Source: Tubulanus polymorphus
Taxonomy: Eukaryota; Animalia; Nemertea
Assembly (NCBI RefSeq): GCF_964204645.1
Contig: NC_134032.1
Coordinates: 13,690,275 to 13,754,274 of the forward strand
Direction: 5' to 3'
Length of the DNA stretch: 64,000 nucleotides
Under the pieces are notes generated by a model. That model ran no database searches. It saw only the letters and a program-made list of their open reading frames with translations, and was not told the origin of the DNA. Made by a program: the position numbers and the translations under genes. Below, piece after piece: positions 1-34,363 of the stretch. Numbering within the stretch: the stretch's first letter is position 1; each line of letters opens with the position of its first letter.

Positions 1-3000
1 CATTGATCAAAATAAATTGCGAGAATCACCCTCTTTCAAGGTACTGAACTGAAAATCTGAAAATTAATGGAAGATTCTTAATAAATACATTTTAAAATTC
101 AGAAACCGACGAGAAGGATTTTCCAATATCACACTTCTACTCACATTCTGCAGTACTAAAATACCAAGTTCACCACACATTGTCTCAGTAGGGGTCGATT
201 CTGTAGGAGGTTCTGTATTAATCTTACATGGTTCTGAAAATGGAATAAGAGAGTCACTTAGAATTTCTTGCAATTCAACTCACATTCTGCAACACATTGG
301 ATGTAATGCATACCAGACAGTCTCACTTGGGTAGATTCTGCAGCACTTGAAATCTATTTCACATGGCAATGAACTGCAAATATAATGAAAGATTCATCAC
401 AATGATATTCTCACATCTAGAAAACAAAAGTGGGTCCAAGATTACATTTTTTCTCCCATACCGTAGCACTCCGATGCTGGGTTCACCAATCTCCAACTGA
501 TGGTAGATTCTCTTGCATATCAAGTTGATCGTACAGCATCTCACCAGTAACAGATTCTGCAGCATTCAGAATCCAATTGTTGAATTTGTGAACGATTCTA
601 CACCAGGCGTTTCTAAATCAGTACAAAATTGTATAAAAGGTGAGTATTATCCAAAAGTGGAAGCCAAAAATGGGAATAATTGGTAAATGGCTGATATCAA
701 ACTTTGATAATATGTTTTACTCACTCAGAATCATTGTCAAATGAATGTCCGGTTTGTGACAAGATGTTGAGAGAAAAGATTTCAGCATCTAAAAACATAA
801 AATAGATTAAAAAAACTCCTTTCTAAAAAGATGATTGATAATTTTGGTGTGAATAAATACCACTTATGATTTCGTTTGTAATCAGCAATGGACTGTAAGT
901 GTCAGGGCTGCTGAAGCTGCTGCAAGCTAAATCAAAATGATGTTCTTCATGGACTTGTTCATCGCATAAAGGATCGATCTTTTACATGGTTTTGAACTTA
1001 AAATAAGATAAAACATTCTCTTTTCAAGTCATTTTGAAGCATAGAAACAAATAGGTTAGATTTCCAATTTGACACTTTTCTACTCACATTCTGCAGCGCT
1101 TGGACGTCAAGTTTACCAGACAGTGTTTCACTAGGGGTTGGATTCTGCAGCACTTGGAATTCATCTCTTATGGGAATGAACTGAAAATATAATGAAAGAT
1201 TCATCGTGAATACATTTTCACACCTAGAAAACAAAATGGAGTATTTCAATTTCCAATTTTACACATTTTTTCTCACATTCTGCAGCACTTTGATGCTGAG
1301 TTCACCAATCTCTAACTGATGGTAGATTCCAAAATACTTGTATATCAACGTTGATCAGACAGCGTCTCACCAGTAACAGATTCTGCAGCACCCTGAATCC
1401 AATTGTGGAATTTGTGAATGATTCTACACCCGACATTTCTAAATCAGTACAAAATTATATAAAAAGTGAGTATTATCCAAAAGTGAAAGCCAAAAATGGG
1501 AATAATTGGTAAATGGCTGATATCAAACTTTGATAATATGTTTTACTCACTCAGAATCAATGTCAAATAAATGTTCTGTTTGTGACAAAATGTTGAGAGA
1601 AGAGACTCAGCATCTAAAAACATAAAATAGATGAAAAACTCATTTCTAAAGATGATTGATCATTTTGGTCTGAGTACATACCACTTATAATTTCGATTGT
1701 AATCAATTATATGAACTGTAAGTGCTTCTGCTGCTGCTGCTCAGGCCATATCAAAATGATGTTCTGTATGGACTTACTTGTTCATTACTTATAGAATCAG
1801 CCTTTTACATGGTATTGAACTGAAAATAGAATAAAACATTCCCAATTAATTCATTTTCAAACATAGAATCCAATAGGGAGGATTTCCAATTTAGCACAAT
1901 TTCTACTCACACTCTGCAGCACTTGGATATCAAGGTTACCAGAAAGTGTTTCACTAGGGGTAAATTCTGTAGCACTTGGAATTCAACTCTCATAGGAATG
2001 AACTGTAAATATAATGAAAGATTAATTTTTCACACCTTGTAAACCAAATGGTGGATTCTAAATTTCCAATTAAGAATTTCTTCTCACATTCTGTAGTACT
2101 TGGATGCTAAGTTCACTAGACAAAGTCTCCCTGACGGTTGTTTCTACAATACTTTGATATGAAAGTTGCTAAGACAGTTTCTCACCAGTGACAGATCCTG
2201 CAGCACTCTGAATCCAATTGTGGAATTTGTAAATGATTCCACACCAGGCACTTCTAAATAAGTACAAAATTAAATAGAAGGTGAGTATTAGCTAAACGTG
2301 GCAGCCAAATGCGGGCATAATTCATAATGGGTATCAATTTCATATATGATTTACTTGGATTCAATGTCACATGAATGTTCTGTTTGTGAATAGATGATGA
2401 TATCGCACCTCATCTGAAAGAAACAAATGGATGAAAAATACACTTCAAAAGATGATTAATCATTTCATTAAAATGAAATTGAATTTCTGTCTGAATACAA
2501 ACCACTTATATTTCTATCACAATCAACAATGGACTGTAAGTGTCAAGGGCTGCTGCTGTTAAGATCCCATTGATCAAAATAAAAATTTCTGTTGACTTGT
2601 GACAATCAACCTCTTTCATGGTACTGAACTGAAAATCTGAAAGTAAAAGAAAAGATTCTCAATAAATACATTTTCAAATTTAGAAACTGATAGGTACGGG
2701 TTTTCAATAATTACACTTCTACTCACATACTGCAGTACTAAAATACCAAGTTCACCACACATTGTCTCAGTAGGGGTCGATTCTGTAGGAGATTCTGTAT
2801 CCATCTTACTAACATGGTACTGAACATAGAATAAGAGAGTCTTCACGAATTCAATTTCAAACATAGAAACCAATGGGGTGGATTTCAAATTCTTTGCATT
2901 TCTACTCACATTCTGCAGCACTTGGATACAATGCATACCGGACAGAGTCGTACTTGGAGGTTGATTCTGCAGCACTTGGAATCCATTTCATACGGCAATG

Positions 3001-6000
3001 AACTGAAAATAAAATGAAAGATTGATTTTTGAATATATTTTCAAACTTAGAAAACAAAAGGGGAATTCATATTTCCTAATTACACTTTTCTCCTCACATT
3101 CTGTGGCACTTGCATGCTGAGTTCATCAGACAGTCTCACTGAGGGTCGAGTCTACAATAGTTGCATATCAAGTTGATCAGACAGCGTCTCACCAGTGACA
3201 GTTTCTGCAGCAATTTGAATCCAATTGTGGAATTTGTGAACGATTCTACACCAGGCGTTTCTAAATCAGTACAAAATTATATAAAAAGTGAGTATTATCC
3301 AAAAGTGAAAGCCAAAAATGGGAATAATTGGTAAATGGCTGATATCAAACTTTGATAATATGTTTTACTCACTCAGAATCAATGTCAAATAAATGTTCTG
3401 TTTGTGACAAAATGTTGAGAGAAGAGACTCAGCATCTAAAAACATAAAATAGATGAAAAACTCATTTCTAAAGATGATTGATCATTTTGGTCTGAGTACA
3501 TACCACTTATAATTTCGATTGTTATCAATTATATGAACTGTAAGTGCTGCTGCTGCTGCTCCTCAGGCCATATCAAAATGATGTTCTGTATAGACTAACT
3601 TGTTCATTACTTAGAGAATCAGCCTTTTACATGGTATTGAACTGAAAATAGAATAAAACATTCCCAATTAATTCATTTTCAAACATAGAATCCAATAGGG
3701 AGGATTTCCAATTCAGCACAATTTCTACTCACACTCTGCAGCACTTGGATATCAAGGTTACCAGAAAGTGTTTCACTAGGGGTAAATTCTGTAGCACTTG
3801 GAATTCAACTCACATAGGAATGAACTGTAAATATAATGAAAGATTAATTTTTCACACCTTGTAAACCAAATGGTGGATTCTAAATTTCCATTTAAGAATT
3901 TCTTCTCACATTCTGTAGTACTTAGATGCTGAGTTCACCAGTCAAAGTCTCACCGACGGTTGTTTCTACAATACTTTGTTATGAAAGTTGCTAAGACAGC
4001 TTCTCACCAGTGACAGATTCTGCAGCACTTCGAATCCAGTTGTGGAATTTGTAAATGATTCCACACCAGGCATTTCTAAATCAGTACAAAATTATATAGA
4101 AGATGAGTATTAGCTTAAAAGTGGATGAAAATGGGTGAAAAATACACTTCAAAGGATATTTAATAATTTCTTTAAAATGAAAGTGAATTTCGGTCTGAAT
4201 ACAAACCAGTTATGTTTCTATCACAATCAACAATGGATTGTAAGTGTCGAGGGCTGCTGCTGTTGAGGTTCCAAAATAATGTTCATTATGGAGTTGTTCA
4301 TTACTTAGAGGATCAACCTTTTACATCAAGTTGAACTGAAAATAAAATAAATCATATTTCATTAATTCATTTTCAAACATAGAAACCAATAGGAAGATAT
4401 TCAAATTTCACTCTTTTCTACTCACATTCTGCAGCACTTGGATGTTAAGTTTACCAGAAAGTGTTTCACTAGGGGTAAATTCTGCAGCACTTGAAATCCA
4501 TCTCTTATCGGAATGAACTGAAAATATAATGAAAGATTCATCACAAATATATTTTCACACCTAGAAAACAAATGTGGTCCAAGATTACACATTTCTTCTC
4601 ACATTCCGAAGCACTTCAATGCTGAGTTCATCAGTCTCTCACTGAGAGTTAATTCCACAACACTTGCATATCAAGTTGATCAGACAGCGTCTCACCAGTG
4701 ACAGATTCTGCAGCATCCCGAATCCAAATGTGGAATTGTGAATGATTCCACACCAGGCATTTCTAAATCAGTACTAAATTATATAGAAGGTGAGTATTAG
4801 CTAAAAGTGGCGGCCAAAAGCGGGCATAATTAATGATGGATATCAAACTTATATGATTTACTTGGAATCAATGTCACATGAATGATCTGTTTGTGAATAG
4901 ATGATGATATTGCACCTCATCTGAAAGAAACAAATAAATGAAAATTACACTTCAACACATGATTAATGATTTCTTTAAAAGAAAATTGATTTCGGTCTGA
5001 ATACAAACCACATTTCTATCGTAATCAACAATGGACAGTAAGAGTCGGGGGCTGCTGCTGCTGCTGCTCAGGCCAGGTCAAAATGACGTTCTTTATGGAC
5101 TTGTTCATTACGAAGAGAGGATCAACCTTTTACATGATGTTGAACTGAAAATAAAACGAATCATTTTTCATTAATTTTCAAGCATAGAAACCAATAGGAA
5201 GATATTCCAGTTTCACACTTTTCTACTCACATTCTACAGCACTTGGATATCAAGTTTACCAGAAAGTGTTTCCCTAGGGGAAAATTCTGTAGCACTTGGA
5301 ATCCATCTCTTATCGGAATGAACTGTAAATATAATGAGATTCATTTTTCACACCTTGTAAACTAAAGGGTGGATTCTGAATTTCCATTTAAAAATTTCTT
5401 CTCACATTCTGTAGTACTTGGATGCTGAGTTCACCAGACAAAGTCTCCCTGACGGTTGTTTCTACAATACTTTGATATGAAAGTTGCTAAGACAGCTTCT
5501 CACCAGTGACAGATTCTGCAGCACTCTGAATCCAATTGTGGAATTTGTAAATGATTCCACACCAGGCATTTCTAAATAAGTACAAAATTATATAGAAGAT
5601 GAGTATTAAATGTGGTGGCCAAAAGCGGGCATAATTGATAATGGGTATCAAATTCATATATGATTTACTTGGAATCAATATCACATGAATGATTTGTTTG
5701 CGAATAGATGATGATATTGCACCTCATCTGAAAGAAACAAATAGATGAAAAATACACACTTCAATCAGATGATTAATAATTTCTTTAAAATGGAATTGAA
5801 TTTCGGTCTGAACACAAACCAGTTATATTTCTATCACAATCAACGATGCACTGTAAGTGTCGAGGGCTGCTGCTGTTGAGGTCCCATTGATCAAAATAAA
5901 AATTTCTGTTGACTTGAGAGAATCAACCTCTTCCATGGTACTGAACATCTGAAAGTAAAAGAAAAGATTCTCAATAAATACATTTTCAAATTTAGAAACT

Positions 6001-9000
6001 GATAGGTACGGGTTTTCAATAATTACACTTCTACTCACATACTGCAGCACTAAAATACCAAGTTCACCACATATTGTCTCAGTAGGGGTCGATTCTGTAG
6101 GTGATTCTGTATCCATCTTACTAACATGGTACTGAACATAGAATAAGAGAGTCTTTACGAATTTATTTTCAAACAAAGAAACCAATAGGATGGATTTCGA
6201 ATTTATTGCAATTCTACTCACATTCTGCAGTACATGGATGCAATGCATACCAGAAATAGTCTTGGGGGTTGATTCCGCAGCACTTGGAATCCATTTCACA
6301 CGGCATTGACAACTGAAAATAAAATCAAAGATTCATTTTGCATTTATTCTCAAACTTAGAAAACAAAAGGGAGAATTTTCAAATTACACGTTTCTCCTCA
6401 CATTCTGTGGCATTTTGTCACATGAATAATCTGTTTGTGAATAGATGATGATATCGCACCTCATCTGAAAGAAACAAATAAATGAAAAATACACACTTCA
6501 ATCAGATGATTAATAATTTCTGTTAAAACAAAATTGATTTCGGTCTGAATACAAACCACATTTCTATGGTAATCAACAATGGACAGTAAGAGTCGGGGGC
6601 TGCTGCTGCTGCTCAGGCCAGGTCAAAATGACGTTCTTTATGGACTTGTTCATTACGAAGAGAGGATCAACCTTTTACATGATGTTGAACTGAAAATAAA
6701 ACGAATCATTTTTCATTAATTTTCAAGCATAGAAACCAATAGGAAGATATTCCAGTTTCACACTTTTCTACTCACATTCTACAGCACTTGGATATCAAGT
6801 TTAATAAATACATTTTAAATTCAGAAACTGACGAGAAGGATTTTCCAATATTACACTTCTACTCACATTCTGCAGTACTAAAATACCAAGTTCACCAAAT
6901 ATTGTCTCAGCAGGGGTCGATTCTGTAGGAGATTCTGTACTAATCTTACATGGTACTGAAAATGGAATAAGAGTCACTTAGAATTTCTTGCAATTCAACT
7001 CACATTCTGCAACACTTGGATGTAATGCATACCAGACAGTCTCACTTGGGTAGATTCTGCAGCACTTGGAATCTATTTCAAATGGCAATGAACTGAAAAT
7101 ATAATGAAAGATTCATCACAAATATATTTTCACACCTATAAAACAAAAGTGGGTCCAAGATTACACATTTTTTCTCACATACTGTAACACTCCGATGCTG
7201 AGTTCACCAATCTCTAACTGATGGTAGATTCCAAACACTTGCATATCAACGTTGATCAGACAGCGTCTCACCAGTAACAGATTCTGCAGCACCCTGAATC
7301 CAATTGTGGAATTTGTGAACCATTCTACACCAGACATTTCTAAATCAGTACAAAATTATATAGAAGGTGAGTATTAGCTAAAAGTGGCGGCCAAAAGCGG
7401 GCATAATTAATGATGGATATCAAACTTATATGATTTACTTGGAATCAATGTCACATAAATGATCTGTTTGTGAATAGATGATGATATTGCACCTCATCTG
7501 AAAGAACACAAATAAATGAAAAATACACTTCAACACATGATTAATGATTTCTTTAAAAGAAAATTGATTTCGGTCTGAATACAAACCACATTTCTATCGT
7601 AATCAACAATGGACAGTAAGAGTCGGGGGCTGCTGCTGCTGCTGCTCAGGCCAGGAAGATATTCCAGTTTCACATTTTTCTACTCACATTCTACAGCACT
7701 TGGATATCAAGTTTACCAGAAAGTGTTTCCCTAGGGGTAAATTCTGTAGCACTTGGAATTCATCTCTCATAGGAATGAACTGTAAATATAATGAAAGACT
7801 CATTTTTCACACCTTGTTAACTAAATGGTGGATTCTGAATTTCCATTTAAAAATTCCTTCTCACATTCTGTAGTGCTTAGATGCTGAGTTCACCAGTCAA
7901 AGTCTCCCCGACGATTGATTCTACAATACTTTGATATGAAAGTTGCTAAGACAGCTTCTCACCAGTGACAGATTCTGCAGCACTCTGAATCCAATTGTGG
8001 AATTGTGAATGATTCCACACCAGGCATTTCTAAATGAGTACAAAATCATATAGAAGATGAGTATTAGCTAAAAGTGGCGGCCAAAAGAGGACATAATTGT
8101 TAATGGATATCAAATTCATATATGATTTACTTGCAATCAATGTCACATGAATGATTTGTTTGTGAATAGATGATGATATTGCACCTCATCTGAAAGAAAC
8201 AAATAGATGAAAAATACACACTTCAAAAGATGATTAATAATTTCTTAAAGATGGAATTGAATTTCGGTCTGAACACAAACCAGTTATATTTCTATCACAA
8301 TCAACAATGGACTGTAAGTGTCGAGGGCTGCTGCTGTTAAGGTCCCATTGATCAAAATAAAGCTTTCATGCTTTCATGGTACTGAACTGAAAATATGAAA
8401 ATAAAAGGAAAGATTCCTAATAAATACATTTTCAAATTAAGAAACCGATAAGTAGGGCTTTTTCCAATAATAACACTTCCACTCACATACTGCAGTACTG
8501 AAATACCAAGTTCACCACAGATTGTCTCAGTAGGGGTCCATTCTGTAGGACATTCTATTTACATCTTGGTACTGAACATAGAATAAGAGTCTGCATGCAT
8601 TTCATTTTCAAACATAGAAACAAATAGGATGGATTTCGAATTCTTTGCAATTCTACTCACATTCTACAGCACTGGGGATAGATTTTGTAGCACTTGAAAT
8701 CCATCTTTCACAGGAATGGACTGTAAATATAATGAAAGATTCATTTTCACACCTTGTAAACAAAAGGGTGGATTCTAAATTTGCAATTTAACATTTCTTC
8801 TCACATTCTGTAGCACTTGGATGCTGAGTTCACCAGACAAAGTCTCCCTGACAATTGATTCTACGATACTTAGACATAAAAGTTGATCAGACAGCCTCTC
8901 ACCAGTGACAGATTCTGCACACTCTGAATCCAATTGTTGAATTTGTGAATGATTCTACACCAGGTTTTTCTAGATAAGTACAAAATTATATAGAAGGCGA

Positions 9001-12000
9001 GTATTAGCTAAATGGGGCAGCCAAAAACGGGCATAATTGATTATGAATATCAAATTCATATATGATTTACTTGCAATCAATGTGGCATGAATGGTCTGTT
9101 TGTGAATAGATGGTGATATTGCACCTCATCTGAAAGAAACAAATAGATGAAAAATACACACTTCAATCAGATGATTAATAATTTCTTTAAAATGAAATTG
9201 AATTTTGGTCTGAACACAAACCAGTTATATTTCTATCATAATCAACAATGGGCTGTAAGTGTCAAGGGCTGCTGCTGTTGAGGTCCCATTGATCAAAATA
9301 AAAATCTCTGTTGACTTGAAAGAATCAGCATCTTTCATGGAATTGAACTGAAAATCTGGAAATAAAAGATAAATACATTTTCAAATTTAGAAACAGATAG
9401 GGAGGATGGATTTTCCAATAATTACACTTTTACTCACATCTATACTGCAGTACTAAAATACCAAGTTCATCGCACATTGTCTCAGTAGGGGTCGATTCCG
9501 TACTTGAAATCTAAACATGGCAATGAACTGAAAATAAAATGAAAGATTCATTTTGAATATATTTTCAAACTTAGAAAATAAAAGGAAGAGTTTTTAATTT
9601 CTAATTTTACACATTTCTCCTCACATTCTGTGGCACTTCCATGCTGAGTTCCTCAGACAGTCTCACTGAGGGTCGAGTCTACAATAGTTGCATATTGTTG
9701 ATCAGTCAGCGAGTTGCAAGTTGATCAGCTTCTCACCAGTGACAGATTCTGCAGCACTCTTGAATCCAATTGTGGAATTTGTGAACGATTCTACGTTACA
9801 CCAGGCATTTCTAAATCAGAACAAAATTGTATAGAAGGCGAGTATTTGCCAAAGAGGAAGCCAAAAATGGGAATAATTGATAATGGCTGATATCAAAATA
9901 TGCTTTACTTTATCGGAATCAATGTTGAAGGAATGATCTGTTTGTGAAGAGATGTTGAGAGAAGATATTTCAGCATCTAAAAACACAAAAGAGATGGAAA
10001 ACTCATTTCTAAAAATAATTGATGACTGCTTTAAAAGAAAATTGAATTTTGGTCTGAATATACATACCGCTTATATTTTGATTGTAATCAATGATGAACT
10101 GTAAGTGTCAGGGTCTGCTGCTGCGCGGACTAGATCAAAATTGATGTTCTTCATGGACTTGTTCATTTCTTAGAGGATCAACCCTTAACATGGTGTTGAA
10201 CTGAAAATAAAATAAATCATTTTTCATTAATTCATTTTCAAACATAGAAACCAATAGGGAGATATTCCAGTTTCACACTTTTCTACTCACATTCTGCAGC
10301 ACTTGGATATCAAGTTCACCAGAAAGTAGGGGAAAATTCTGTAGCACTTGGAATACATCTCTAATAGGAATGAACTGTAAATACAATGAAAGATTCATTT
10401 TTCACACCTTGTAAACGAAATGGTGGATTCTAAATTTCCAATTAAACATTTCTTCTCACATACTGCAGCACTCCGACGCTGAGCTCACCAGTTTCACTGA
10501 AGGTTGATTCTACAATACTTTGATATCAAAGTTGATCAGACAGCGTCTCACCAGTGACAGATTCTGCAGCACACTGAATCCAATTGTGGAATTTGCGAAC
10601 GATTCTACACCAGGCATTTCTAAATCAGTACAAAAATATATAGAAGGTGAGTATTAGCTAAAAGTGGTGGCCAAAAGCGGGCATAATTGATAATGGATAT
10701 CAAACTTATATATGATTTACTTGGATTCAATGTCACATGAATGTTCTGTTTGTGAATAGATGATGATATTGCACCTCATCTGAAAGAACACAAATAGATG
10801 GAAAATACACTTCAAAAGATGATTAATAATTTCTTCAAAATGAAATTGAATTTCGGTCTGAATACAAACCACTTATATTTTCATCATAATCAACAATGGA
10901 CTGTAAGTGTCAAGGGCTGCCAGTGTTCAGGTCCCATGGATTGAAATAAAAATCTCTGTTGACTTGAGAGAATTAACCTCTTTCATGGTACTGAACTGAA
11001 AATCTGAAAATAAAAGAAAAGATTCTCAATAAATACATTTTCAAATTCAGAAACCGATAGGGAGGATTTTCCAATATTACAATACTACTCACATTCTGCA
11101 GTACTAAAATACCAAGTTCACCACACATTGTCTCAGTAGGGGTCCATTCTGTAGGAGATTCTGTATCCATCTTGGTACTGAAAATGGAATAAGAGAGTCT
11201 TCATGAATTTATTTTCAAACATAGAAACAAATAGGATGGATTTCGAATTTATTGCATTTCTACTCACATTCTGCAGCACTTGGGATGCAATGCATACCAG
11301 AAATAGTCTTGGGGGTTGATTCCGCAGCACTTGGAATCCATTTCACACGGCAATGAAAACTGAAAATAAAATGAAAGATTCATTTTGAATATATTTTCAA
11401 ACTTAGAAAACATAAGGGGAGTTTATGATTTCCTAATTACACGTTTCTCCTCACATTCTGTATCACTACAATGCTGAGGTCACCAGTCTACAATAGTCGC
11501 ATGTCAAGTTGATCAGACAGCATCTCACCAGTGACAGATTCTGCAGCACTCTGATTCCAATTGTTGAATTTGTGAACGATACCACATCAGGCGTTTCTAA
11601 AGTACAAAATTATATATGGAAGATGAGTATTAGCTAAAAGTGGAAAAATTGGAATAATTGCTAATGGCTGATATCAAACTTTGAATGTGTTTTACTCACT
11701 AGGACTCAACGTCAAATGAATGTCTGTTTGTGACGAGATATTGAGAGAAAAGATTTCAGCATCTAAATACATAAAATAGATTTAAAAAACTCCTTTCTAA
11801 AAAGATGATTGATAATTTTGGTGTGAATACATACCACTTATAATTTCGATTGTAATCAACAATGGACTGTAAGTGTCAGGGCTGCTGAAGCTGCTGCAAG
11901 CTAAATCAAAATGATGTTCTTCATGGACTTGTTCATCGCATAAAGGATCGATCTTTTACATGGTTTTGAACTGAAAATAAGATAAAACATACTCTTTTCA

Positions 12001-15000
12001 AGTCATTTTGAAGCATAGAAACAAATAGGTTAGATTTCCAATTTGACACTTTTCTACTCACATTCTGAAGCGCTTGGACGTCAAGTTTACCAGACAGTGT
12101 TTCACAAGGGGTTGGATTCTGCAGCACTTGGAATTCATCTCTTATGGGAATGAACTGAAAATACAATGAAAGATTCATCGTGAATACATTTTCACACCTA
12201 GGAAACAAAATGGAGTATTTCAATTTCCAATTTTACACATTTTTTCTCACATTCTGCAGCACTTTGATGCTGAGCTCACCAATCTCTAACTGATGGTAGA
12301 TTCCAAAATACTTGCATATCAACATTGATCAGACAGCGTTTCACCAGTTACAGATGCAGCACCCTGAACCCAATCGTGGAATTTGTGAATGATACCACAT
12401 CAGGTTTTTCTAGATGGGAACAAAATTATATAGAAGGTGAGTATGAATCAACAATGCCAGCCAAAAATGAGCATGATTAATAATGGATATCAAAGTCATA
12501 TATGATTTACTTGGAATCAATATCGCATGAATGGTCTGTTTGCAAATAGATGATGATATTGCACCTCATCTGAAAGAAACAAATAGATGAAAAATACTCT
12601 TCAAAAGATAATTAATAATTTCTATAAACTGAATTTGAATTTCGGTCGGAATACAAACCAGTTAAATTTCTATCATAATCAACAATGGACTGTAAGTGTC
12701 AAGGGCTGCTGCTGTTAAGGTCCCTTTGATCAAAATAAAACTCTTGTCGACTCGCGACAATCAAACTCATTCATGGTACTGAACTGAAAATATGAAAATA
12801 AAAGGAAAGATTCCTAATAAAAACATTTTCAAATTAAGAAGCCGATAGGTAGGGCTTTTTCCAATAATAACACTTCCACTCACATACTGCAGTACTGAAA
12901 TACCAAGTTCACCACAGATTGTCTCAGTAGGGGTCCATTCTGTAGGAGATTCTATTTACATCTTGGTACTGAACATAGAATAAGAGTCTTCATGCATTTC
13001 ATTTTCAAACATAGAAACAAATAGGATGGATTTCGAATTCTTTGCAATTCTACTCACATTCTACAGCACTGGGGATAGATTTTGTAGCACTTGAAATCCA
13101 TCTTTCATAGGAATGAACTGTAAATATAATGAAAGATTCATTTTTCACACCTTGTAAACAAAAGGGTGGAATTTGCAATTTAAAAATTTCTTCTCACATT
13201 CTGTAGTACTTAGATGCTGAGTTCACCAGACAAAGTCTTCCTGACAATTGATTCTATGATGCTTAGATATGAAAGTTGATCAGACAGCGTCTCACCAGTG
13301 ACAGATTCTGCACACTCTGAATCCAATTGTTGAATTTGTGAATGATTCTACACCAGGTGTTTCTAGATAAGTACAAAATTATATAGAAGGCGAGTATTAG
13401 CTAAATGGGGCAGCCAAAAACGGGCATAATTAATAATGGATATCAAATTCATATATGATTTACTTGCAATCAATGTCGCATGAATGATCTGTTTGTGAAT
13501 AGATGATGATATTGCACCTCATCTGAAAGAAACAAATAGATGAAAAATACACACTTCAATCAGATGATTAATAATTTCTTTAAAATGAAATTGAATTTTG
13601 GTCTGAACACAAACCAGTTATATTTCTATCATAATCAACAATGGACTGTAAGTGTCAAGGGCTGCTGCTGTTGAGGTCCCATTGATCAAAATAAAAATCT
13701 CTGTTGACTTGAGAGAATCAGCATCTTTCATGGAATTGAACTGAAAATCTGGAAATAAAAGATAAATACATTTTCAAATTTAGAAACAGATAGGGAGGAT
13801 GGATTTTCCAATAATTACACTTCTACTCACATACTGCAGTACTAAAATACCAAGTTCATCACACATTGTCTCAGTAGGGGTCGATTCTGTACTTGAAATC
13901 TAAACATGGCAATGAACTGAAAATAAAATGAAAGATTCATTTTGAATATATTTTCAAACTTAGAAAAGAAAAGGGAGAGTTTTTAATTTCTAATTTTACA
14001 CATTTCTCCTCACATTCTGTGGCACTTCCATGCTGAGTTCCTCAGACAGTCTCACCGAGGGTCGAGTCTACAGTAGTTGCATATTGTTGATCAGTCAGCG
14101 AGTTGCAAGTTGATCAGCTTCTCACCAGTGACAGATTCTGCAGCACTCTTGAATCCAATTGTGGAATTTGTGAACGATTCTACGTTACACCAGGCATTTC
14201 TAAATCAGAACAAAATTGTATAAAAGGCGAGTATTTGCCAAAGAGGAAGCCAAAAATGGGAATAATTGATAATGGATGATATCAAAATATGCTTTACTTT
14301 ATCGGAATCAATAATGAAGGAATGTTCTGTTTGTGAAGAGATGTTGAGAGAAGATATTTTAGCATCTGAAAACATGTAATAGATGGAAAACTTATATCTA
14401 AAGATAATTGATGACTGCTTTAGAATAAAATTGAATTTTGGTCTGAATATACATACCACTTATATTTTGATTGTAATCAACGATGGACTGTAAGTGTCGG
14501 GGGCTGCTGCTGCTGCGGCTGCTCGGACTAGATCAAAATTGATGTTTTTCATGGACTTGTTCATTACCGGTTCTTAGAGGATCAACCTTTAACATGGTGT
14601 TGAACTGAAAATAAAATAAACCATTTTTCATTAATTCATTTTCAAACATAGGAACCAATAGGAAGATATTCCAGTTTCACACTTTTCTACTCACATTCTG
14701 CAGCACTTGGACGTCTGTAGCACTCTGATTCCAATTGTGGTATTTGTGAACAATTCTACACCAATAAGTACAAAATTAAATAGAAGGTGAGTATTAGCTA
14801 AATGTGGCGGCCAAAAGCGGGCATAATTTATAATGGATATCAAACTTATTTATGATTTACTTGGAATCAATGTTGTATGAATGTTCTGTTTGTGAATAGA
14901 TGCTTATATTGCACCTCATCTGAAAGAACACAAATAGATGAAAATTACTTTTCAAAAGTTGAGTTATAATTTCTTTAAAATGAAATTGAATTTTGGTCTG

Positions 15001-15878
15001 AATACAAACCACTTATATTTCTAATCAACGATTGACTGTAAGTGTGAAGGGCTTCCAGTGTTCAGGTCCCTCGGATTAGAATAAAAATCTCTGTGGATTT
15101 GCGATTATCAACCTCTTACAACCTGGTACTGAACTGAAAATAAGTGAAAATAATAAATACATTTTCAAATTTAGAAAGCGATAGGCAGGATTTCTAATCT
15201 TACACGTTCTGCAGCACTAAAATCCCAAGTTCACCAAACATTGTCTCAGTAGGGTCGATTCACTAGGAGTTTCCATCCATTTTATTTGGTACTGAACATA
15301 GAATAAGAGAGTCTTCATGAATTAATTTTCAAACACAGAAACAAATAGGATGGATTTGGAATTTCTTGCAATTCTACTCACATTCTGCAGTACATGGATG
15401 CAATGCATACCAGACAGTCACTTGGGTAAATTCTGCAGCACAATGGATGTTCACCAGACGGTGAGTTTCACTGGGGAAAGACTCTGTAGTACTTGCAATC
15501 CTTTTTTCATGGCGCTGATCTATGAAATAGAATTCAAAATTCTTCATGAATACATTTTCAAACATAGAAACCAATACGGAGGATTTCCAATTTTACACAA
15601 TTCTACTCCTCTCCTCACATTCTACAGCACTTGGACATCAAGTGCACCAGAAAGTGTTTCACTAGGGGTAGATTCTGCAGTACTTGGAATCCATCTCTTA
15701 TGGGAATTAGCTGAAAATATAATGAAGGATTCATCAAGATTATATTTCCATATCTTGAAGACAATAGCAAGCATTTTCAATTTCCAATTTTACACATTTC
15801 TTTTCACATTCTACTAAATTCATTTTTCAAACAGTTAGGGCGGATTTCCTATCTCCAGTTTGACTCAGTTCTACTCAC
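1..15878 (-). repeat. Macrosatellite of ~0.8-1.0 kb units (at least 18 copies, truncated by the window's left edge), each built of four exon-like blocks and four short GT-AG introns on the minus strand
   Basis: The marker 'ctgtaagtgtc(a/g)agggctgctgctg' recurs near 905, 1725, 2547, 3545, 4251, 5047, 5864, 6597, 7627, 8325, 9266, 10112, 10914, 11879, 12703, 13659, 14500 and 15049. Higher-order duplications are visible (e.g. ~1380-2250 vs ~3180-4100; ~8330-10100 vs ~12720-14500). Confidence 0.93.
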
Positions 15879-16440
15879 ATTATGCAGCACTTTGAAGTCA
15901 AGTCCACCAGACAGTGTCTCGCTGGGGATAGATTCTGCAGTACTTGGATGTCAAGTTCACCAGACAGTGTCTCACTGGTGGTAGATTCTGCAGCACTTGA
16001 AAGTCAAGTTCACCAGACAGTGTCTCACTGGGAGTTGATTCTGCAGTACTTGGATGTCAAGTTCACCAGACAGTGTCTCACTGGGGGTAGATTCTGCAGC
16101 ACTTGGATGTCAAGTTCACCAGACAGTGTCTCACTGGGGGTTGATTCTGAGCACTTGGATGTCAAGTTCACTGGACAGTGTCTCAATAGGGGTAGATTCT
16201 ATAGCACTTGGATGTCAAGTTCACCAGACAGTGTCTCACTGGGGGTTGATTCTGAGCACTTGGATGTCAAGTTCACCAGACAGTGTCTCACTGGGGGTTG
16301 ATTCTGAGCACTTGGATGTCAAGTTCACTGGACAGTGTCTCAATAGGGGTAGATTCTGCAGCACTTGGATGTCAAGTTCACCGGACAGTGTTTCACTTGG
16401 GGTAGATTCTGCATCAGTCAAGTTCACCGCACAGTGTCTT
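15879..16440 (-). repeat. Tandem array of a 53-bp unit (~10 copies); the same motif is embedded in the macrosatellite exons
   Basis: Unit gattctgcagcacttggatgtcaagttcaccagacagtgtctcactggggg(t/g)(a/t), period 52-53 bp (e.g. 16090 to 16143). Bounded by a minus-strand donor (tactcac at 15872-15878). Confidence 0.95.
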
Positions 16441-16957
16441 ATTTAGAACAAATTCTGTACTTCGGATGTCTCATCAGCGTTGATTGCATCATCAGAAATT
16501 TCACAATTTGCAATTTTTCGCCGTGAATGAAATAAACGGAAGAGAAATCATGTAATAAAATCACAATCAATAAATATCCCAAGACTTTATAAGTGAACAG
16601 TAAAACTAAGTCAAGTTTGAATCCTTTAGCGCTAGAAGTAAGTCTCAAATATACAAAATGTCTGAATATCTGAAAAAGCCGACAATATGGATCGACAGAA
16701 CATTTTGAGACGTGCATATTTTTAGCAGTTTTAAAACAAGTAAAAAGCATCACTCTGGTACATCCCATCCCAGGAATTGTCAAAATTTCTGACTGTTAAG
16801 TGTCAGTTCTTATAAATCTTGAGTTTTATTCCAACGAAAATACATTACACTGAGGCCACAATTTTGAATTGGATCACATAAAATATTCAAATATTTCTCC
16901 CTATGATTTTTATCCGTTATAACTTAGAAATTTCGAATATTCATCTAACATTCCAAA

Positions 16958-17382
16958 TTCCTCGTCCGAGCTAAACTTATTCCAGTGGTTTACAAAGACG
17001 GCCGACACCTCTTTCTTTCTGTTTTGTTCTTTTTTGCGCCCGTGAATTACGCTTAAACATGTTCGAGGTGATTTTTTCAAACTGTTTTAAGGTGCGTCCC
17101 CGCAGACAACTGAGGCTAGGATAGAAATGCCCGTATCCCTTGACGCACAGGACTACCCTATCGAGTAAGTGATCATACACACGATACTCTCAGGCCCCGG
17201 AGTCCGCGGTTCAGTAAAGGAGCGTCCGATGCCCTGATGCTATCGTCCTCCCCGGGCGGCCTTTCGCCATCCCTGTCACCGAGCATATTCACTTTAAGGG
17301 CTACCACCCCCCTTACCGCCACCGCTATTTTTCTTCCCGCCGACTCGCAACCACAGAAATTAAGTTTAGCTCGGAAAAGGAA
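16958..17382. mobile_element. Non-autonomous DNA transposon/MITE with ~35 bp imperfect terminal inverted repeats
   Basis: ttcctcgtccgagctaaacttattccagtggtt at 16958 is the inverse of aaccacagaaattaagtttagctcggaaaaggaa ending 17382; the interior is GC-rich. Confidence 0.6.
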
Positions 17383-18257
17383 GAACCCGAATGGATTCAA
17401 TCGGATTTATACGTGTGGTCAGGTTTGGGTTCGTATCCCGAGGCACCGAGCACGACGTATTTCGATGTGACCAGTTTGTCACTAACGTCACTGATTCTGA
17501 ATAAGTTCCCGAAGTGAGATTAGAAATGAATCAGCGAAAATAGAGAATTTTGAAATCATAAGAATAAATATCTGCATTTTTATGTATCCAAAATAGAAAC
17601 CAGTATTATTAGACCTCGTGATTGAACAAATGAATTTTGAATTTTGATAGTTATAAATTGGAAAAAGGTTTAGAATATTGAGCTATTTGACAACCACACG
17701 TGTGTCGATGTATTTAGTTAGAATTCACTCAAAAACAGTCAAAACACCTCATCGACAACTGGTCAAATTGTTGTCTTCACAGCATATCTTTTGATTCCTA
17801 GGTATTCGAAATCAAAAGGATTCAAACCTGACAGAGAAATTTATATCAATGATTCTTTGAATGATTTTACTCACCTTCTGCAGCACCTGGATGTCGAGTT
17901 TTCCAGTTCATCAGAGTTTAGCATCACACTGGAGGTAGATTCTTTAGCACTTTGGATGCCAGGTCAATCAGCAGTAAGTTCACTGGTGGAATAGAAATAG
18001 AAAAAAAGCTTAATAGAATTCAATATCTTGGAAATCTGGAAATTTTCACCAGATTTCACTGCATATACTCACCAGCTCTGGAGTCAGCTAGGGCTGTGGA
18101 TGTATGACTCGAGGTCATATTGTTCAAAATGTGGACAAGTCCATACTCTGAAATGCCAAAAATACATTGGTTCAAATGTAAATATTTCTTGAGTCTGATT
18201 AGGGTATGCCCTTAAGAGTACCTATAGTATTTCGAACCTACACTAAGCATGAGTAAT

Positions 18258-18990
18258 TTGTTCACTTATTTCTCCACAGTTTGAAGAATGTTTGTTCTCT
18301 CATCTTCGTTAGTAATGAAAAGCGTTCCCATCCGCGTAACTACGACATCACTACATTCCCACTTCTCTGACTGTAGTGTGGATTAGGAGAGGGAGGTTTT
18401 GGTTTGGAATGGGGAAGGGTACAGGGAGTTCACAGGTAGGGTAGAATGGGGCAATGTGATAAGGTTAGGTCTGGGTTGGATAATGCAGGGTGTTTGGTAT
18501 GGCTGGGTTGTCGGATGATGAGTTTGCTAGAACTGATCGGGGGCGGTGTATATGGTAGGATAGTTTAGTGTAGTTAAGTAGGTGTGTGATAAGAGAGAAA
18601 GGGTGATGTTAAGGCAGTACAGAAGTGATGGTGGTAGGGTTAGGGTAGAAGGATGAAGCGGGGTAGGGTAATAGGATAGAGTAGGACAGGATGTGGTAGG
18701 GTAAGGTCTATTTTGGATGGAGTAGGGTATTTTTGGTTTAGTTGAGGAGAGGAACGAGTTTTCTGTGGTTGGGTTGGGATGATTGGGCCGTATTCAGCAG
18801 GGGGCAGGGATGGGGACCATTTTTTTCCCTTTTGGGTTCCTCTGCCCCCTATAAGTCAAAATCTTTGTACGGCCCTGGATGAATGGAGTCCTTAGAAGGG
18901 TATAGGGTAGTGATATTTGATAGGCATACGGTAAGAGGCAGTGTAAGGGTGTTCAGGGAGTGAAAGCACTGTGTGTTATGGGGCAGGGTT
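18258..18990 (-). repeat. Dispersed repeat (GGGTAG/CTACCC-rich), copy 1; inverted relative to the copy at 28290-28900
   Basis: The reverse complement aligns along its length with 28290-28900 (e.g. gaagatgagagaacaaacattcttc, ccccattccaaaccaaaacct, ccctgcccca). Interrupted by a small GC-rich insert at ~18785-18877. Confidence 0.8.
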
Positions 18991-28289: not shown

Positions 28290-28900
28290 CTACCCTGCCC
28301 CATTTCACCTGGTCCTACAATGTCCTACCACCACTTACACTGCCTATTACCATACACCTATCAAACATTGTACTAGCATACCCTTCCAAGAACTACACCC
28401 ATCCCAAACCCAACCACACGACCCTACCCCACCCAGAGACCTTACCCTATCGCATCCTCTCCTACTCTATCCTATCACCATACCCCACCTCACCCTCCTA
28501 TCCGAACCCTACCACCGTCACTTCTGTACTGCCTTAACACCAGCCTTTCTATCTCTTATCACAGACCTACCGAACTACACTACCCTATCCTACCACATAC
28601 ACCACGCACCCCGTTATCAGTTCTACCAAACTCACCATCCAACCCAACCACACCAACGCACCCTGCACCATCCAACACTCGACCTAACCTTATCACATTG
28701 TCCTATATATCTTACCCTACGTGTGAACTACCTCTGTACCCTTCCCCATTCCAAACCAAAACCTACCTCTCCTAATCTATACTACATTCAGAGAGGTAGA
28801 AATGCTATGATGTCGCGGTTAAACGGATGGGAGTGATTATCAATACTAATGAAGATGAGAGAACAAACATTCTTCCAAATGAGGAGGAATAAGTGAACAA
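28290..28900 (+). repeat. Dispersed repeat (CTACCC-rich), copy 2
   Basis: Diverged inverted copy of 18258-18990. It accounts for the spurious His/Pro/Thr-rich ORF 28156-28836. Confidence 0.8.
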
Positions 28901-31309
28901 ATGACTGTGAAGGCAATCAGTGTGACATGTACATCAACAATGAGTGTGAAACTTCTACACGTAAAATCTTACACAAATCAGACTGCATTGAAAACCTTTA
29001 CAGCTCCTAGTGATAAATATAACTCTACTTATCTTTTTTTGAGCGATTCATTTTCTGTTGCTTCTTTTTGCTCCTTTTTTGCTCCTCTGTCGCTCCTGTA
29101 CTGCTCTTGTTGCTCCTATGTTGCTGAAAATGTTTGAATGAATTAATTGGCTTGAATGGCATCATTGGCAAAAACAAATTAGTTTGTGAATCTATTATAC
29201 TGCGCATTAACGAAAGCTATGAAGCGATCTCTATCGTTTACCGAAAAATTTTACAAAAAAACGATGTATAAAAGACTATCGAAATAGAAATTACTGAATT
29301 ATATAAACCACTGTTTGGGGATGTCAGGAGCTCCTGGTGGTATCATCTCGCGGTGGAACTAAATCCCGGACCTCTGTAAAGGTTGCCAATATTTTCTCCA
29401 GTCATAATCTTGGGAAAATCCTCACGCTCTGAAAAATCTTGACAGTTGCCGGTTCTGTATTTTTAGCTAAGGGGTGAGAAACTTATCTTTGAACTTACTT
29501 ATCTTTAAACTTTTGATGCTGCTTGGATCCCATGTTCCCATGTTGATACCATATTTTACTAATTTCGTGCTGCTGTTGCTGTTGCTGCTCCAAAGTCGAC
29601 AGATGCTGCTCCTATTGACAGACCACTTGCAGATCCTGTTACACATGATGAATACCCTTAGTGAAACGATACCAGAAAACTCAATTAATTATTTCGATTT
29701 TCTGTAATGGTTGAAAGATCTTAATTCATTCTGATATGAAATGAATACTCACCAAACCATTCAGATTAAATGAAGATGCTGTTTTAATGTTAACTATTCA
29801 ATCGATTTTGTTTCCAGTGGCTATCAATCTGAAATAGAGATACAAATTATTCTAAAAAAAGAAATCTTCACACTTAGAACTAACGGCAATGAAGACAATG
29901 AATACTTACTGTTATAACCTAAAAGTTTTTCGAAAATACCTTTCAGACTTGTCGAGACATCTATCAGTAGGGCGTTTTTGGTATCTGAAAACGAAAATTA
30001 AAGATTTTAAGATTTCCAAACGAAAATGTCAATTATCAGAATGAAATCAATTGAACTTAATGAGCAATTAAACTAGGCCAGAAATACAAGATTTGAAAAC
30101 AAAATTCATTTCAGTTTTTCAGGAATGGTACTTTACACCTCCAACAAAATCTTACTACAAAATCATTAATTGTCACTTAAAATGAAAAAAAATTCACGAA
30201 GACACTGTTTTTAATACATTTCATATTCGTTGTATCTTAATTATATCTAAAACTTACCAGATATGTTAAGATTTTCTGACTTGGCTTTTGGCGGGTAATT
30301 ATTTCTCACTACAGACTCTTCGCTGTTGTACGTGCGTTATACGTGGTGGCTGGTCGTCGAATGAAGCGGTGCGCTCTAACCATGCGTTACGATAAATCCG
30401 CTGTTGGCACAATACAATTTGGGCCGCGGCTATTGTGCGGAAAGTCGATCAAATCGTGACCCAAAATGGACACAATGATCGGACCGAAGGAGTGCCAAAC
30501 TGTTCGAATTCTATTGGCAAACTATCTGTTTCATTATTTTATGCTACGGACGGATTTGATAAACCAGCTTCAGCCGGTTCAGAACTCGGCTGCAAGACTG
30601 AATAAAGAGGCAGAAATAAATATATTCACATCACTCTTTTTTCTAATAACTATATGTATTCTAGATTTTATGATATTGCATAAATAAGGCCTTATTAAAT
30701 TGTGGTCGTTTTACATAAAACAATGTAATTAGTTACTTTATGCAACGGCACGAAAATTGACGGCCATCCTCGGATCAAGGTCTCCTTAATGCCAAATGTT
30801 ATCGTACAAAAATATATGATGGTTTCTATATTTGCCTCTGTTTTGTCAGTGAAATAGTGTTCTCAGTTTTATTTGGTGGCTGTGGTAGTGTTTTCAAAAC
30901 TCATTTCTATAAAAGACAAAACTGTATGTTGCCGTGTGTGTGAATAGTCAAGTTTTTCAAATGCTGCAGGGCCGAGACCCCGGCGGGATAATCGGATGGG
31001 AATGGGATAATCGGAATTTCTTAGGTTCATCCTGGGACTTAGGTCTCATGGGTCCGTTTCCACGTAAGGAAATTAGAATTCTAAATTGTTTTTGTTTGTT
31101 TGAGTGAGGATTACTAATTACTCGGCAGCCGTAGAACCTAAAGTCCAAACTACGTGATTTATTGTTAACAATTTAGTCCGAAAAGCGCGATTTAGTGTAT
31201 AAGAATTCCCAGGGATACCGGAAGCGATCGAATTACGGTTGTTAGGGTAGTGCGTTTCGATTATTGCAATCAAGGATCAGATTCAGTTTTAGTCACAAAT
31301 TCGAGCGAA

Positions 31310-34300
31310 ATGTCGAGAACGTCATCAACTTTCCGCAAGCAGTCGCCTCTTAGGTCTTCCAAATCTGCACAGAAATCATTAGGAGGTCAGTAATTAGTCT
31401 AATCAACAGTTTTAACACACGTTTAAACCCCGTTTCTAAGGAGTACTTGACACAAAACGGGAACCTGCTCGGGCACCTGCTAGCTATACGATTTGACAGA
31501 TCGCGAGAATTCGGGTTAAAAATATTCGATAACTGTCGTTAGAATAGTGGTTGCGATCTGATAGAGCGATTAAAGCGATTAAAATGCCAATAACCAGAGA
31601 GATTTCGCAACCAATCGGGGACAAGAGTCCCGATGTTTTGCAGTGGAAGGAGACTTTAAGGTCGCCTTCCCCGACACCGAAAATGGATCAAAAACTTCGT
31701 TCTTCATCGAGATCTGGTAAGAATTAATTCAAGCTGGCAAATCTTTCACCATCAATAGATTATCACTGCTGTATAAAAAACAATAGTTAAAGAAATTATA
31801 ACAGATTTTGTCGCTATTATACTAACCATGTCACTTTTATAATACAGATAATAGTTTTGCCATCACAAATCTATTTTTCTAATAGATGTCGTAGGCCCTA
31901 TAATAGTAGATTTCTCTTAATTGTTGGGATCATCAGAGGGCCCACATCGATGGACAGGGGATAGCAATTAGGTTTTATTTAATAAAACACATTGCTTTCT
32001 ATTAAGATGCTCTGATGGGTGCATGGGTGTGTCCACTCACTCAAATGATCAGGTCTTTAACAATAAGTTGAAGAAATGGTGACTGACTAAAACTTCCGAG
32101 TTATCCTCATTTTCACTCCCCTCTTCCTCTAGCCTTTTCTCTGCCTCCTGGCCTGCACATTCAAGTTTTTCTCACTCCCTATGGGTCCAGTACCACAATT
32201 AGGCCCTATGGCTTAGTCCAAAAGAAGTCCACAAAGTTGGTCTTAATTGTAAGATTGGCTTAATACTAAGAATGCTCCGCTAATCCATAGCTGTTTGCTG
32301 GTCGTTAAATAGTGCTAGTTGCGTGATCAGTATTTGAGGTGCTGGTTTTCTATATGTGTTTATATTGAAGGTACATATTCCACTGATGTAGGTTTAAGAC
32401 GCAGCAACAGCTTTGGAAGTCTGAAACGCAGCAACAGCAACGGAAATCTGAGAAAATCGGCTGCTTCGTTCAACGGTAGCAGGTCAGTATCGAAAACTGT
32501 TCATCTTTAAATTGTTCCGCAATTAATTTCTTCAAAAATTTTGAAAATTTGTTCTTCTTCAAAGCTGCAGGATTTTCATAGATCAGGGAATTTCGGATTT
32601 ATTTAGCCTATTTTTCCTGCAGGAAATTCTGACTTTTCTTGAAAATCAGGGAATGCGAATATTTGGTGTCTCGTTATTCATGTGGGGAAACTCTTGATAA
32701 AAACAGCCCCTATCTCGTAATTCAATCGGGGAATTTTGGAATCCCTGATCTGTAAGAACCTTGCTTAACCTTTTTTATTCCAAAACCAAAATTTCAAAAA
32801 GAAAAACATCACTTTTTTAAATTTTGTATTATTTGTAGCGGTAAACTGAATAAGTCGATGGAGTTGTCGAACATCGAAGGGGAATACATCAAAAACCTTC
32901 AGAAACAAATCTATTTCCTCGAACTGGAATCAAACTATCTATATCCTTTTACCGATAAACGACTTCACAACTATCTCCACAACCTTACGAAATCTATAAA
33001 ACATCGAAAATATTCACAAGTTTGTTTCCTTGACCGAGAATATCTACGCGGGAACAAGCTCGTAAAGCGACCAGCATGCATCCGATAATGACATCGGAGG
33101 CAGAGAGAATGCTTAGTAAACTCAGAGTAAGTAAATCAACAAGACTTTCCGTGTATATAGAAACTATTCTTCATATGGAAATATTTTTCTGACCTTCCAA
33201 ATTATATACAAACTCTCAGTTATCAAATCATAAAAATTGTGTCCTGTCCAAAAGGATACATGTAATCAATAGCTCAATATTTATTGTACCTTAATGGTTT
33301 TTAGGCTAAAATAAAATGATATCTTGTTTCCTCTAATCGGCCGGTCATTTTGTAAACTGCAATAAAATCAGTTCATTTCCTATAACTGCCGGGTCTGTTA
33401 TCGTAAAGCTTGATCATGATTGAAAAAAAAGTAATGTACAGGTTATAAAGGTGGCCAGCAGTGTCAACTGTTAAGCCCAGCATAAATGAGAAACAAGGTA
33501 TCAATTTCCTTTAGCCTTACTTTGTCATCTTCACCCGTCAAGGGATTCGAACCCACTACGCTAAACCTGTTCGCCGAACCCCTTGACCTCACGAGTCGTT
33601 GGAGTCGTTACTAGCCGACCAGAATCCGGTTGTACCAATCACAGCGTTTGTAACAAACGATTTAAGGCTTCTATTGGGTTTCCCGTTAAATAGACCAATC
33701 AGCGAACGTTTTACTGAACAAGGAAGCATTTCGCAAATCGATATATGACGTCATGCGCAACAGCGCCAGTAATGAAATCACGCTTCGTTAGGCCAGGGGG
33801 CTGGTGGAAGCGAGTTCGGGAGTGATGCCGGTACCTGGCAAGCGAGGATGTACTTTCTGTGAAGAGCTGTGATGAAATTCATCTAGAACAGCGCTATGAG
33901 AAAATAATTTACTCTCACAGGGTCCCTACAACTACTTGAATCCTTGAAAACTCCTTGATTTTTGAATATACTTTTCAAGGTCCTTGAAAATCCTTTAATT
34001 TTGAGAAATATCCATAAACTCCTTGAAACTCCTTAAATTCTGGGAAAGTCCTATTGAAAATTTTCAAAAGGTCCTTTTCAGAAGACAGTGTATTCTATTA
34101 TTCTTCATTGTGTGACTTGTGAGTGAAAGTTGTTTCACTTTGAGATTTAAAACATTTAAACATGTAAAACCAAAACGGCATACACAACAACTGATCAAAA
34201 TTTGAGAAAAACATGGATTTTGTTTTTGAATTTTCGACTTTTTTTCCTTATATATGACCGCGAAAACCTCCTTGAATTTTGAAAATTACTCCTTGAAAAT

Positions 34301-34363
34301 TCCTTGAAAAGTCCTTGAATTCTGGATACCAGGAATTGTAGGAACCTTGTCTCATATATTATT

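Follow-up and report, generated by a model that had tools for sequence, protein, structure and literature searches.

A single-locus macrosatellite of exon-intron-like modules with conserved splice signals in the nemertean Tubulanus polymorphus

Introduction

Can a tandem repeat that encodes nothing be maintained as a chain of exons and introns? This question is raised by a stretch of 64,000 nucleotides of the genome of the nemertean Tubulanus polymorphus (contig NC_134032.1, positions 13,690,275 to 13,754,274 of the forward strand, here called the window), the first 15,878 nucleotides of which form part of a tandem array of units of approximately 820 bp. Each unit can be read on the minus strand as four short exon-like parts (A, D, C and B) separated by four short intron-like parts. 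A preliminary description, made from the letters of the window, proposed that this was either a repeat RNA whose splicing is preserved and whose coding is not, or the outcome of recent amplification of a pseudogene for a repeat protein rich in Ser, Thr and Glu.

The interpretation favoured here, which we hold with a little less than even confidence, is that the array is a non-coding, germline-methylated macrosatellite derived from a 53-bp satellite, that it is transcribed from the minus strand and spliced, either now or until recently, and that only its splice signals are constrained. A fuller account is more tentative, namely that of a single gene-like macrosatellite locus of ~78 kb whose ~310 short introns would be removed from a spliced non-coding RNA, with selection keeping the splice signals while the exons drift, birth from the 53-bp satellite and methylation of the gene-body type.

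Results and discussion

Extent and higher-order structure of the array

The array was delimited using nhmmer with the example unit of ~820 bp as the query and with the 70 kb upstream of the window added, together with a self-comparison of the window. The tandem repeat gave 180 matches, all on one strand, among them 54 near-full units, with many partial ones. The whole array was found to cover 78,604 bp at a single locus, running from 62,190 bases before the start of the window to window position 16413 (G000:C8:13,628,085-13,706,687), with the macrosatellite part of the window lying at 1-15878 on the minus strand. Approximately 311 intron-like modules were counted over the whole array, 76 of them at 1-15878 (17 A-type, 16 D-type and 43 B/C-type), a number that agrees with the figure of about 75 mini-exons given in the preliminary description.

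Neighbouring units are only ~76% identical, whereas each unit has a partner of ~98% identity situated 4.4, 10.2 or 20.9 kb away, or 2.7 kb away in the far part of the array. The array is a classical higher-order repeat and a macrosatellite, its units standing head to tail in one orientation with neighbours less alike than block partners. The A/D half of the unit was found nowhere else in the genome and is confined to this single locus. In the far part of the array, transposon-like inserts of 1.12 kb and a C/T-rich insert of 0.9 kb were found to have been co-amplified with the units.

Both the classical higher-order repeat behaviour and the amplification of transposon-like inserts along with the units favour the main rival to a spliced RNA, which is that the array is an inert satellite. 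Its founder would by chance have included fragments of an old transcription unit, or been put together from them; the GT..AG dinucleotides and the alternating composition would be amplified relics, and the array would today be silenced, repeat-methylated heterochromatin in which no splicing takes place. We regard this explanation as possible, if somewhat doubtful, and it is weighed below wherever the evidence touches it.

Several observations concern the inserts and surroundings of the array. Four 1.12-kb inserts of 98-99% identity lie 44.1-53.2 kb before the window start (L012-L013), within a higher-order block of 2.66 kb; their inverted ends are rich in TTCCGGAAAT and, as judged by eye only, an internal open stretch resembles the zinc-finger N-terminus of a hAT-type transposase. 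One copy of the C/T-rich insert inside the array (L014) contains, at ~2990-3100 on the minus strand and 36.9 kb before the window start, a short stretch resembling the terminal part of an exon of an ionotropic glutamate receptor (..NGTWNGMIGELVRK), with GTACGA after it. A segment of 434 bp, 95% identical and inverted, was found on both sides of the array (window 33917-34350 and 65.0-65.4 kb before the window start) and is possibly a mobile element. A separate macrosatellite with blocks of ~2-4.4 kb that are 94-98% identical is located at C8:15,662,000-15,671,999 (L023). It was considered as a member of the same family as the present array and rejected, as the two have no sequence similarity; tandem arrays with kilobase units seem to be common in this genome. 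A search of the literature found no paper on the repeats of this genome and none on exon-intron macrosatellites.

Exon-intron organization of the unit

The coordinates and motifs previously given for an example unit were exact upon rechecking. Following the minus strand, exon-like A (1682-1819; 138 nt, closed in all three frames, GC 0.39) is succeeded by intron-like A (1614-1681; 68 nt, GTATGT..TTTTAG, GC 0.25 and T 0.46), exon-like D (1551-1613; 58-64 nt in most units), intron-like D (1439-1550; 112 nt, GTGAGT..ATTTAG), exon-like C (1277-1438), intron-like C (1181-1276; 96 nt, GTGAGA..TTTCAG), exon-like B (1088-1180) and intron-like B (997-1087; 91 nt, GTGAGT..TTTAAG, with TTTTCAG in the consensus).

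That the splice dinucleotides are retained in most units was borne out by counts across the whole array. Among A modules GT was present in 49 of 49 and AG in 46 of 49, while B/C modules kept GT in 163 of 173 and AG in 158 of 173 (44/44 and 41/44, respectively, for intron-like B). D modules had AG in all 64 cases and GT at the aligned column in 39/64, the others being offset by 1-4 nt, and their donor was GTGAGT, GTAAGT or GTAAAT according to subfamily. The motifs were also found to be biased by strand within the array, GTGAGT occurring 111 times versus 22 and TTT[CT]AG 244 times versus 44.

The intron lengths had been likened to those of neighbouring genes. A coiled-coil gene is located on the plus strand at window 34429-36989, and one of its introns, used for comparison (~137 nt, roughly 36538-36674, GTAAGA..TTTGTAG), is of a length that the sizes of the intron-like parts fit. 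An array of spliced-leader RNA genes was also considered as a candidate, prompted by a donor followed by the Sm-site-like AAATTGG, and was rejected: there is also an acceptor at the end of every spacer, exon lengths are 60-190 nt and the U-run is too short.

Conservation of splice signals

Rates of change were counted as Fitch steps per column on a tree of the 54 units. The average column was found to keep its majority base in ~80% of units, and exon-like and intron-like columns changed at equal rates (2.32 versus 2.25 steps), a result that sits well with an inert satellite. The 16 columns of the splice dinucleotides, by comparison, showed 0.56 steps versus 2.29 elsewhere, approximately four times fewer (p = 8e-5), with 0 steps on all four columns of intron-like A. 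Donor positions +3 to +6 (1.19 steps) and the pyrimidine tract (1.55 steps) were slow as well (both p = 0.01). This comparison of GT/AG and donor positions with the remainder of the unit had been suggested in the preliminary description, and it places the splice positions below both the exon and the intron columns.

The splice sites were also set against the other dinucleotides of the same kind in the unit (40 GT and 43 AG), for which the mean of the summed steps was 4.4. The predicted donors had summed steps of 0, 3, 4 and 1 (p = 0.05) and the predicted acceptors 0, 1 and 0 (p = 0.006). Columns of G and C normally change more than those of A and T (2.8 versus 2.0 steps), yet the splice sites are slow. 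Six diverged units outside the window, 77-82% identical to the window consensus, were taken to reduce bias from the choice of sites, and in these held-out units the splice dinucleotides were kept in 88% of cases versus 56% for other GT/AG (p = 0.005). The predicted canonical splice sites of the array are conserved above background. An inert satellite leaves unexplained the GT/AG columns that change about four times more slowly, their slower change relative to other GT/AG, including in units beyond those seen for the preliminary description, and the slowness of donor +3 to +6 and of the pyrimidine tracts.

Coding capacity

Reading frames were assessed in each exon separately and in the unspliced majority consensus of the unit, doubled to close the circle. 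Exon A was found to lack an open frame in ~49 of the 54 units and to be closed in all frames in the consensus as well as in almost all subfamilies, exon C lacked one in ~35 of 54, and exon B was open in one frame in most units. No open stretch longer than 57 codons was found in the doubled consensus on either strand, and with the consensus closed, the founder unit was already non-coding. Exon lengths differ by amounts that are not multiples of three and the exons contain stops, as had been noted (A 112-148, D 58-64, C 131-186 and B 60-95 nt). Substitutions showed no three-base periodicity in exons A, B and C (p = 0.47-0.83); for the 63-nt exon D the value was p = 0.04, in one of eight tests. 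A protein search with the read-through open reading frame (ORF) of 158 codons at 5823-6299 (minus strand), intended to pick up peptides predicted from assemblies of spliced transcripts, returned no matches. Rfam gave no match in the whole window at the gathering threshold, nor in two dispersed loci of the satellite family described below at E values up to 0.1.

The array is non-coding, and the earlier statement that it has no conserved reading frame is right even of the unit consensus. A protein-coding gene with iterated exons, or a recently dead pseudogene of one, is accordingly a very improbable explanation that is already largely refuted by these data. It can draw on exon B being open in one frame in most units, on one frame of the 53-bp monomer reading as a Ser/Thr/Glu-rich peptide, and on the existence of real genes, such as that of the spider Flag silk, in which exon-intron modules are iterated and introns are homogenised like exons. 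The closed exons A and C, the closed consensus, the exon lengths and the missing codon periodicity all speak against it. Moreover, the monomer length of 53 bp is not divisible by three and TGA stands in one of its frames, so that pure 53-bp arrays cannot stay open beyond approximately two monomers and cannot code. The genome has no parent copy of the A/D half, and no protein relatives were found with the read-through ORF. Since the Ser/Thr/Glu-rich peptide is one frame of the satellite monomer, the reading of a Ser/Thr/Glu-rich protein is illusory, and the pseudogene proposed earlier is not supported.

Satellite origin of modules B and C

Modules B and C are paralogues, intron-like C being a paralogue of intron-like B, and both have exon-like cores built from copies of the same 53-bp satellite monomer. 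Exon-like C consists of ~42 nt of unique sequence and ~2.3 copies of the monomer (positions 424-543 of the unit model match pure 53-bp arrays), and exon-like B of 22 nt and ~1.3 copies (model positions 662-732). Contigs C3, C6 and C8 carry arrays of the monomer at over 20 further loci, and additional tracts of it lie inside the macrosatellite. That the cores of B and C are a genuine dispersed satellite is in keeping with an inert satellite. Introner-like elements were considered as the source of the intron-like parts and rejected: intron-like segment C gave 41 matches, every one of them within the array, and this confinement means that it is not an introner family.

The macrosatellite is capped at both ends by the satellite, with a pure 53-bp array of ~10 copies at 15879-16413 (minus strand) and a matching array of 0.8 kb at 60.8-61.6 kb before the window start. 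Beyond the former, just upstream of the array in minus-strand terms, lies a 1.1-kb core (16819-17943, minus strand) that is rich in CpG, with a ratio of observed to expected CpG (CpG o/e) of about 1.0. This core belongs to a low-copy dispersed family of ~20 copies on C1, C3, C6, C8 and C10 that are 81-86% identical to window 16819-17943 and are flanked by 53-bp arrays. A remnant of a second 53-bp array is found on the opposite side of the core (17865-17974, minus strand), and a mini-exon-like piece bounded by TTTCAG and GTGAGT lies at 18026-18173 (minus strand). A homologous piece stands ahead of the 53-bp arrays in the dispersed copies of the family, where it carries an acceptor and then GTGAGY ... 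YAG, the spacer aligning to intron-like B/C with nhmmer. Homology among the dispersed loci is colinear over at least 5 kb. Given the presence of the core, the 53-bp arrays and the mini-exon-like piece, window 15.9-19.8 kb is one copy of the low-copy family, and the macrosatellite appears to have grown at the satellite end of this copy.

With regard to the family itself, the 53-bp satellite always accompanies the CpG-rich core at the ~20 loci (L018-L022 on C3, C6 and C8). Its copies on C3 recur every ~44.5 kb (432.8, 477.2 and 521.7 kb onward), a spacing that points to a large segmental tandem duplication. An element of ~400 bp, resembling a miniature inverted-repeat transposable element, forms an inverted pair at dispersed loci (L018 524-922 and 3001-3400) and occurs twice in the window (18252-18649 and 28510-28994). 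An ORF of 67 codons in the 1.1-kb core was examined as a gene and rejected; it is open in all copies but has no ATG, and its protein identity of 66-89% is about that of the DNA. No meaningful Pfam match was obtained for nine ORFs in 16.4-19.7 kb.

Composition and CpG decay

The four intron-like parts were found to have a GC content of 0.25-0.30 and a T content of 0.38-0.46 on the minus strand, and the exon-like parts a GC content of 0.35-0.43. High exon GC is named as a pattern of multi-exon long non-coding RNA (lncRNA) loci in a published study (PMC4338330).

The CpG o/e of the array is 0.36 versus 0.94 for the rest of the window, and the CpG-poor domain is sharply bounded, with values of 0.2-0.5 in the array versus 0.8-1.3 in the flanks. 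CpG columns are hypermutable (4.93 versus 2.64 steps, p = 2e-6), with changes almost only to TpG or CpA, and the array was therefore methylated in the germline while it diversified. In invertebrates germline methylation mainly marks transcribed gene bodies.

Evidence for and against splicing

The splice-site conservation, the otherwise equal rates of exon-like and intron-like columns, the alternation between exon-like and intron-like composition and the CpG decay, which matches that of germline-methylated gene bodies, are consistent with a repeat RNA whose splicing, rather than coding, is maintained. The sequencing runs did not yield the corresponding spliced products. A search of runs with the stretch gave three that contain it, of unrecorded kind and none on record as RNA, and their contigs cross predicted introns unbroken (e.g. 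810-1101, 1059-1423 and 1627-1805) with no joint of 60-120 nt. One further run that is RNA-like had nothing matching the array. The three containing runs look like DNA; if any of them is RNA, it counts against splicing. The preliminary interpretation is partly supported: indirect evidence from the DNA fits its first alternative, for which the runs gave unspliced contigs only.

Alongside these contigs and the empty RNA-like run, several further points weigh against transcription and splicing of the array. The canonical dinucleotide is lost in ~9% of modules. Two of the four introns of a single unit pass a strict motif rule, where 5000 dinucleotide shuffles gave 0.28 on average; this parse exceeds chance only modestly, and the argument depends on conservation across units. 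The conservation test itself has only 7-8 sites, in effect three independent intron families; these sites may have been chosen partly for their conservation, and heterogeneity of rates among sites would carry that bias into the held-out units. The alternation of composition could be inherited from a founder derived from a gene. The dispersed 53-bp loci are also CpG-poor, so the methylation may be directed at repeats, and the CpG decay could equally be explained as repeat silencing. Lastly, the selective cost of losing a single intron out of ~310 is difficult to picture for a non-coding RNA. The unspliced contigs, the RNA-like run, the CpG-poor satellite loci and the modest parse of a single unit are each also what an inert satellite would be expected to give.

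The matter of selective cost would be met if the array lay inside a larger host transcript, either as a series of untranslated exons or as one very long intron taken out in steps via internal splice sites, as the signals would then serve the processing of a flanking gene and each splice site would carry a cost. This arrangement, which we consider unlikely, accounts for the same splice-signal constraint and methylation, and the mini-exon-like piece with its acceptor and donor at 18026-18173, just upstream on the minus strand and conserved at dispersed loci, would suit it. However, no minus-strand coding exons were found in either flank, the ORFs at 16.4-20.6 kb being without a Pfam match and the far flank having only short repeat-like ORFs.

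Proposed origin and significance

For the favoured interpretation, that of a spliced non-coding macrosatellite, the following course of events is proposed from the sequence relationships above. A dispersed 53-bp satellite locus would have been the starting point, at which a module of an intron-like spacer and satellite monomers was probably duplicated to give modules B and C. These would then have been joined to the locus-specific modules A and D to form the 820-bp composite, which may subsequently have been amplified in blocks of 2.7, 4.4 and ~10 kb. The array would be transcribed from the minus strand, at present or until recently, with a start plausibly in or near the putatively unmethylated CpG-rich core at 16.8-17.9 kb. 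The T-rich spacers of ~90 nt would be spliced out as ordinary short introns, and the product would be an RNA of concatenated exons of 60-160 nt with no reading frame. Selection would act on the splice signals and not on the exon sequence, in which case any function would reside in transcription and splicing as such, or in the RNA's bulk properties, as opposed to a sequence-encoded product.

If the array is transcribed and spliced, it represents a natural case of selection keeping splice sites in hundreds of copies while the rest of the unit evolves freely. It would then be a clean system for what splicing and spliceosome recruitment contribute apart from the RNA product, and would illustrate how a short satellite can give rise to a gene-like locus. 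A silent array would still be a documented case of a satellite whose relic exon-intron architecture mimics a gene. Such satellites will mislead gene predictors into false multi-exon models, and annotators should therefore know of these cases.

Comparison with known systems

The human D4Z4 and DXZ4 macrosatellites are similar to the array in having head-to-tail units on the kilobase scale at one locus, blocks that are homogenised and a methylation that differs from that of the flanks. They differ in that an intronless ORF (DUX4) is present in each D4Z4 unit and CTCF sites in those of DXZ4, and neither unit is a chain of small exons and introns or is built on a dispersed short satellite. Context for DXZ4 can be found in PMC6125249.

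Arrays of the Su(Ste)/Stellate type in Drosophila likewise consist of tandem gene-like units with introns kept, coding lost and transposon inserts amplified. Su(Ste), however, derives from an identifiable protein gene of the CK2 beta family and acts via antisense piRNAs, whereas the present array has no parent gene and all of its units are in one orientation. The genes for spider flagelliform silk and the Balbiani-ring genes of Chironomus share with the array modules of exon plus intron that evolve in concert, with introns as similar as exons; their exons keep a long open frame, while the array has none, even in its consensus.

Among RNAs associated with repeats, Xist, FIRRE and hsr-omega have their repeats inside exons or in unspliced transcripts. 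Known multi-exon lncRNAs have a handful of unique exons, in comparison to the ~310 introns found here in the form of a macrosatellite, and we know of no described locus with that many introns so arranged. What the array does have in common with multi-exon lncRNAs (PMC4338330 and further literature) is a constraint confined to splicing signals, whereby exons are near-neutral while splice-related positions and exon GC are maintained.

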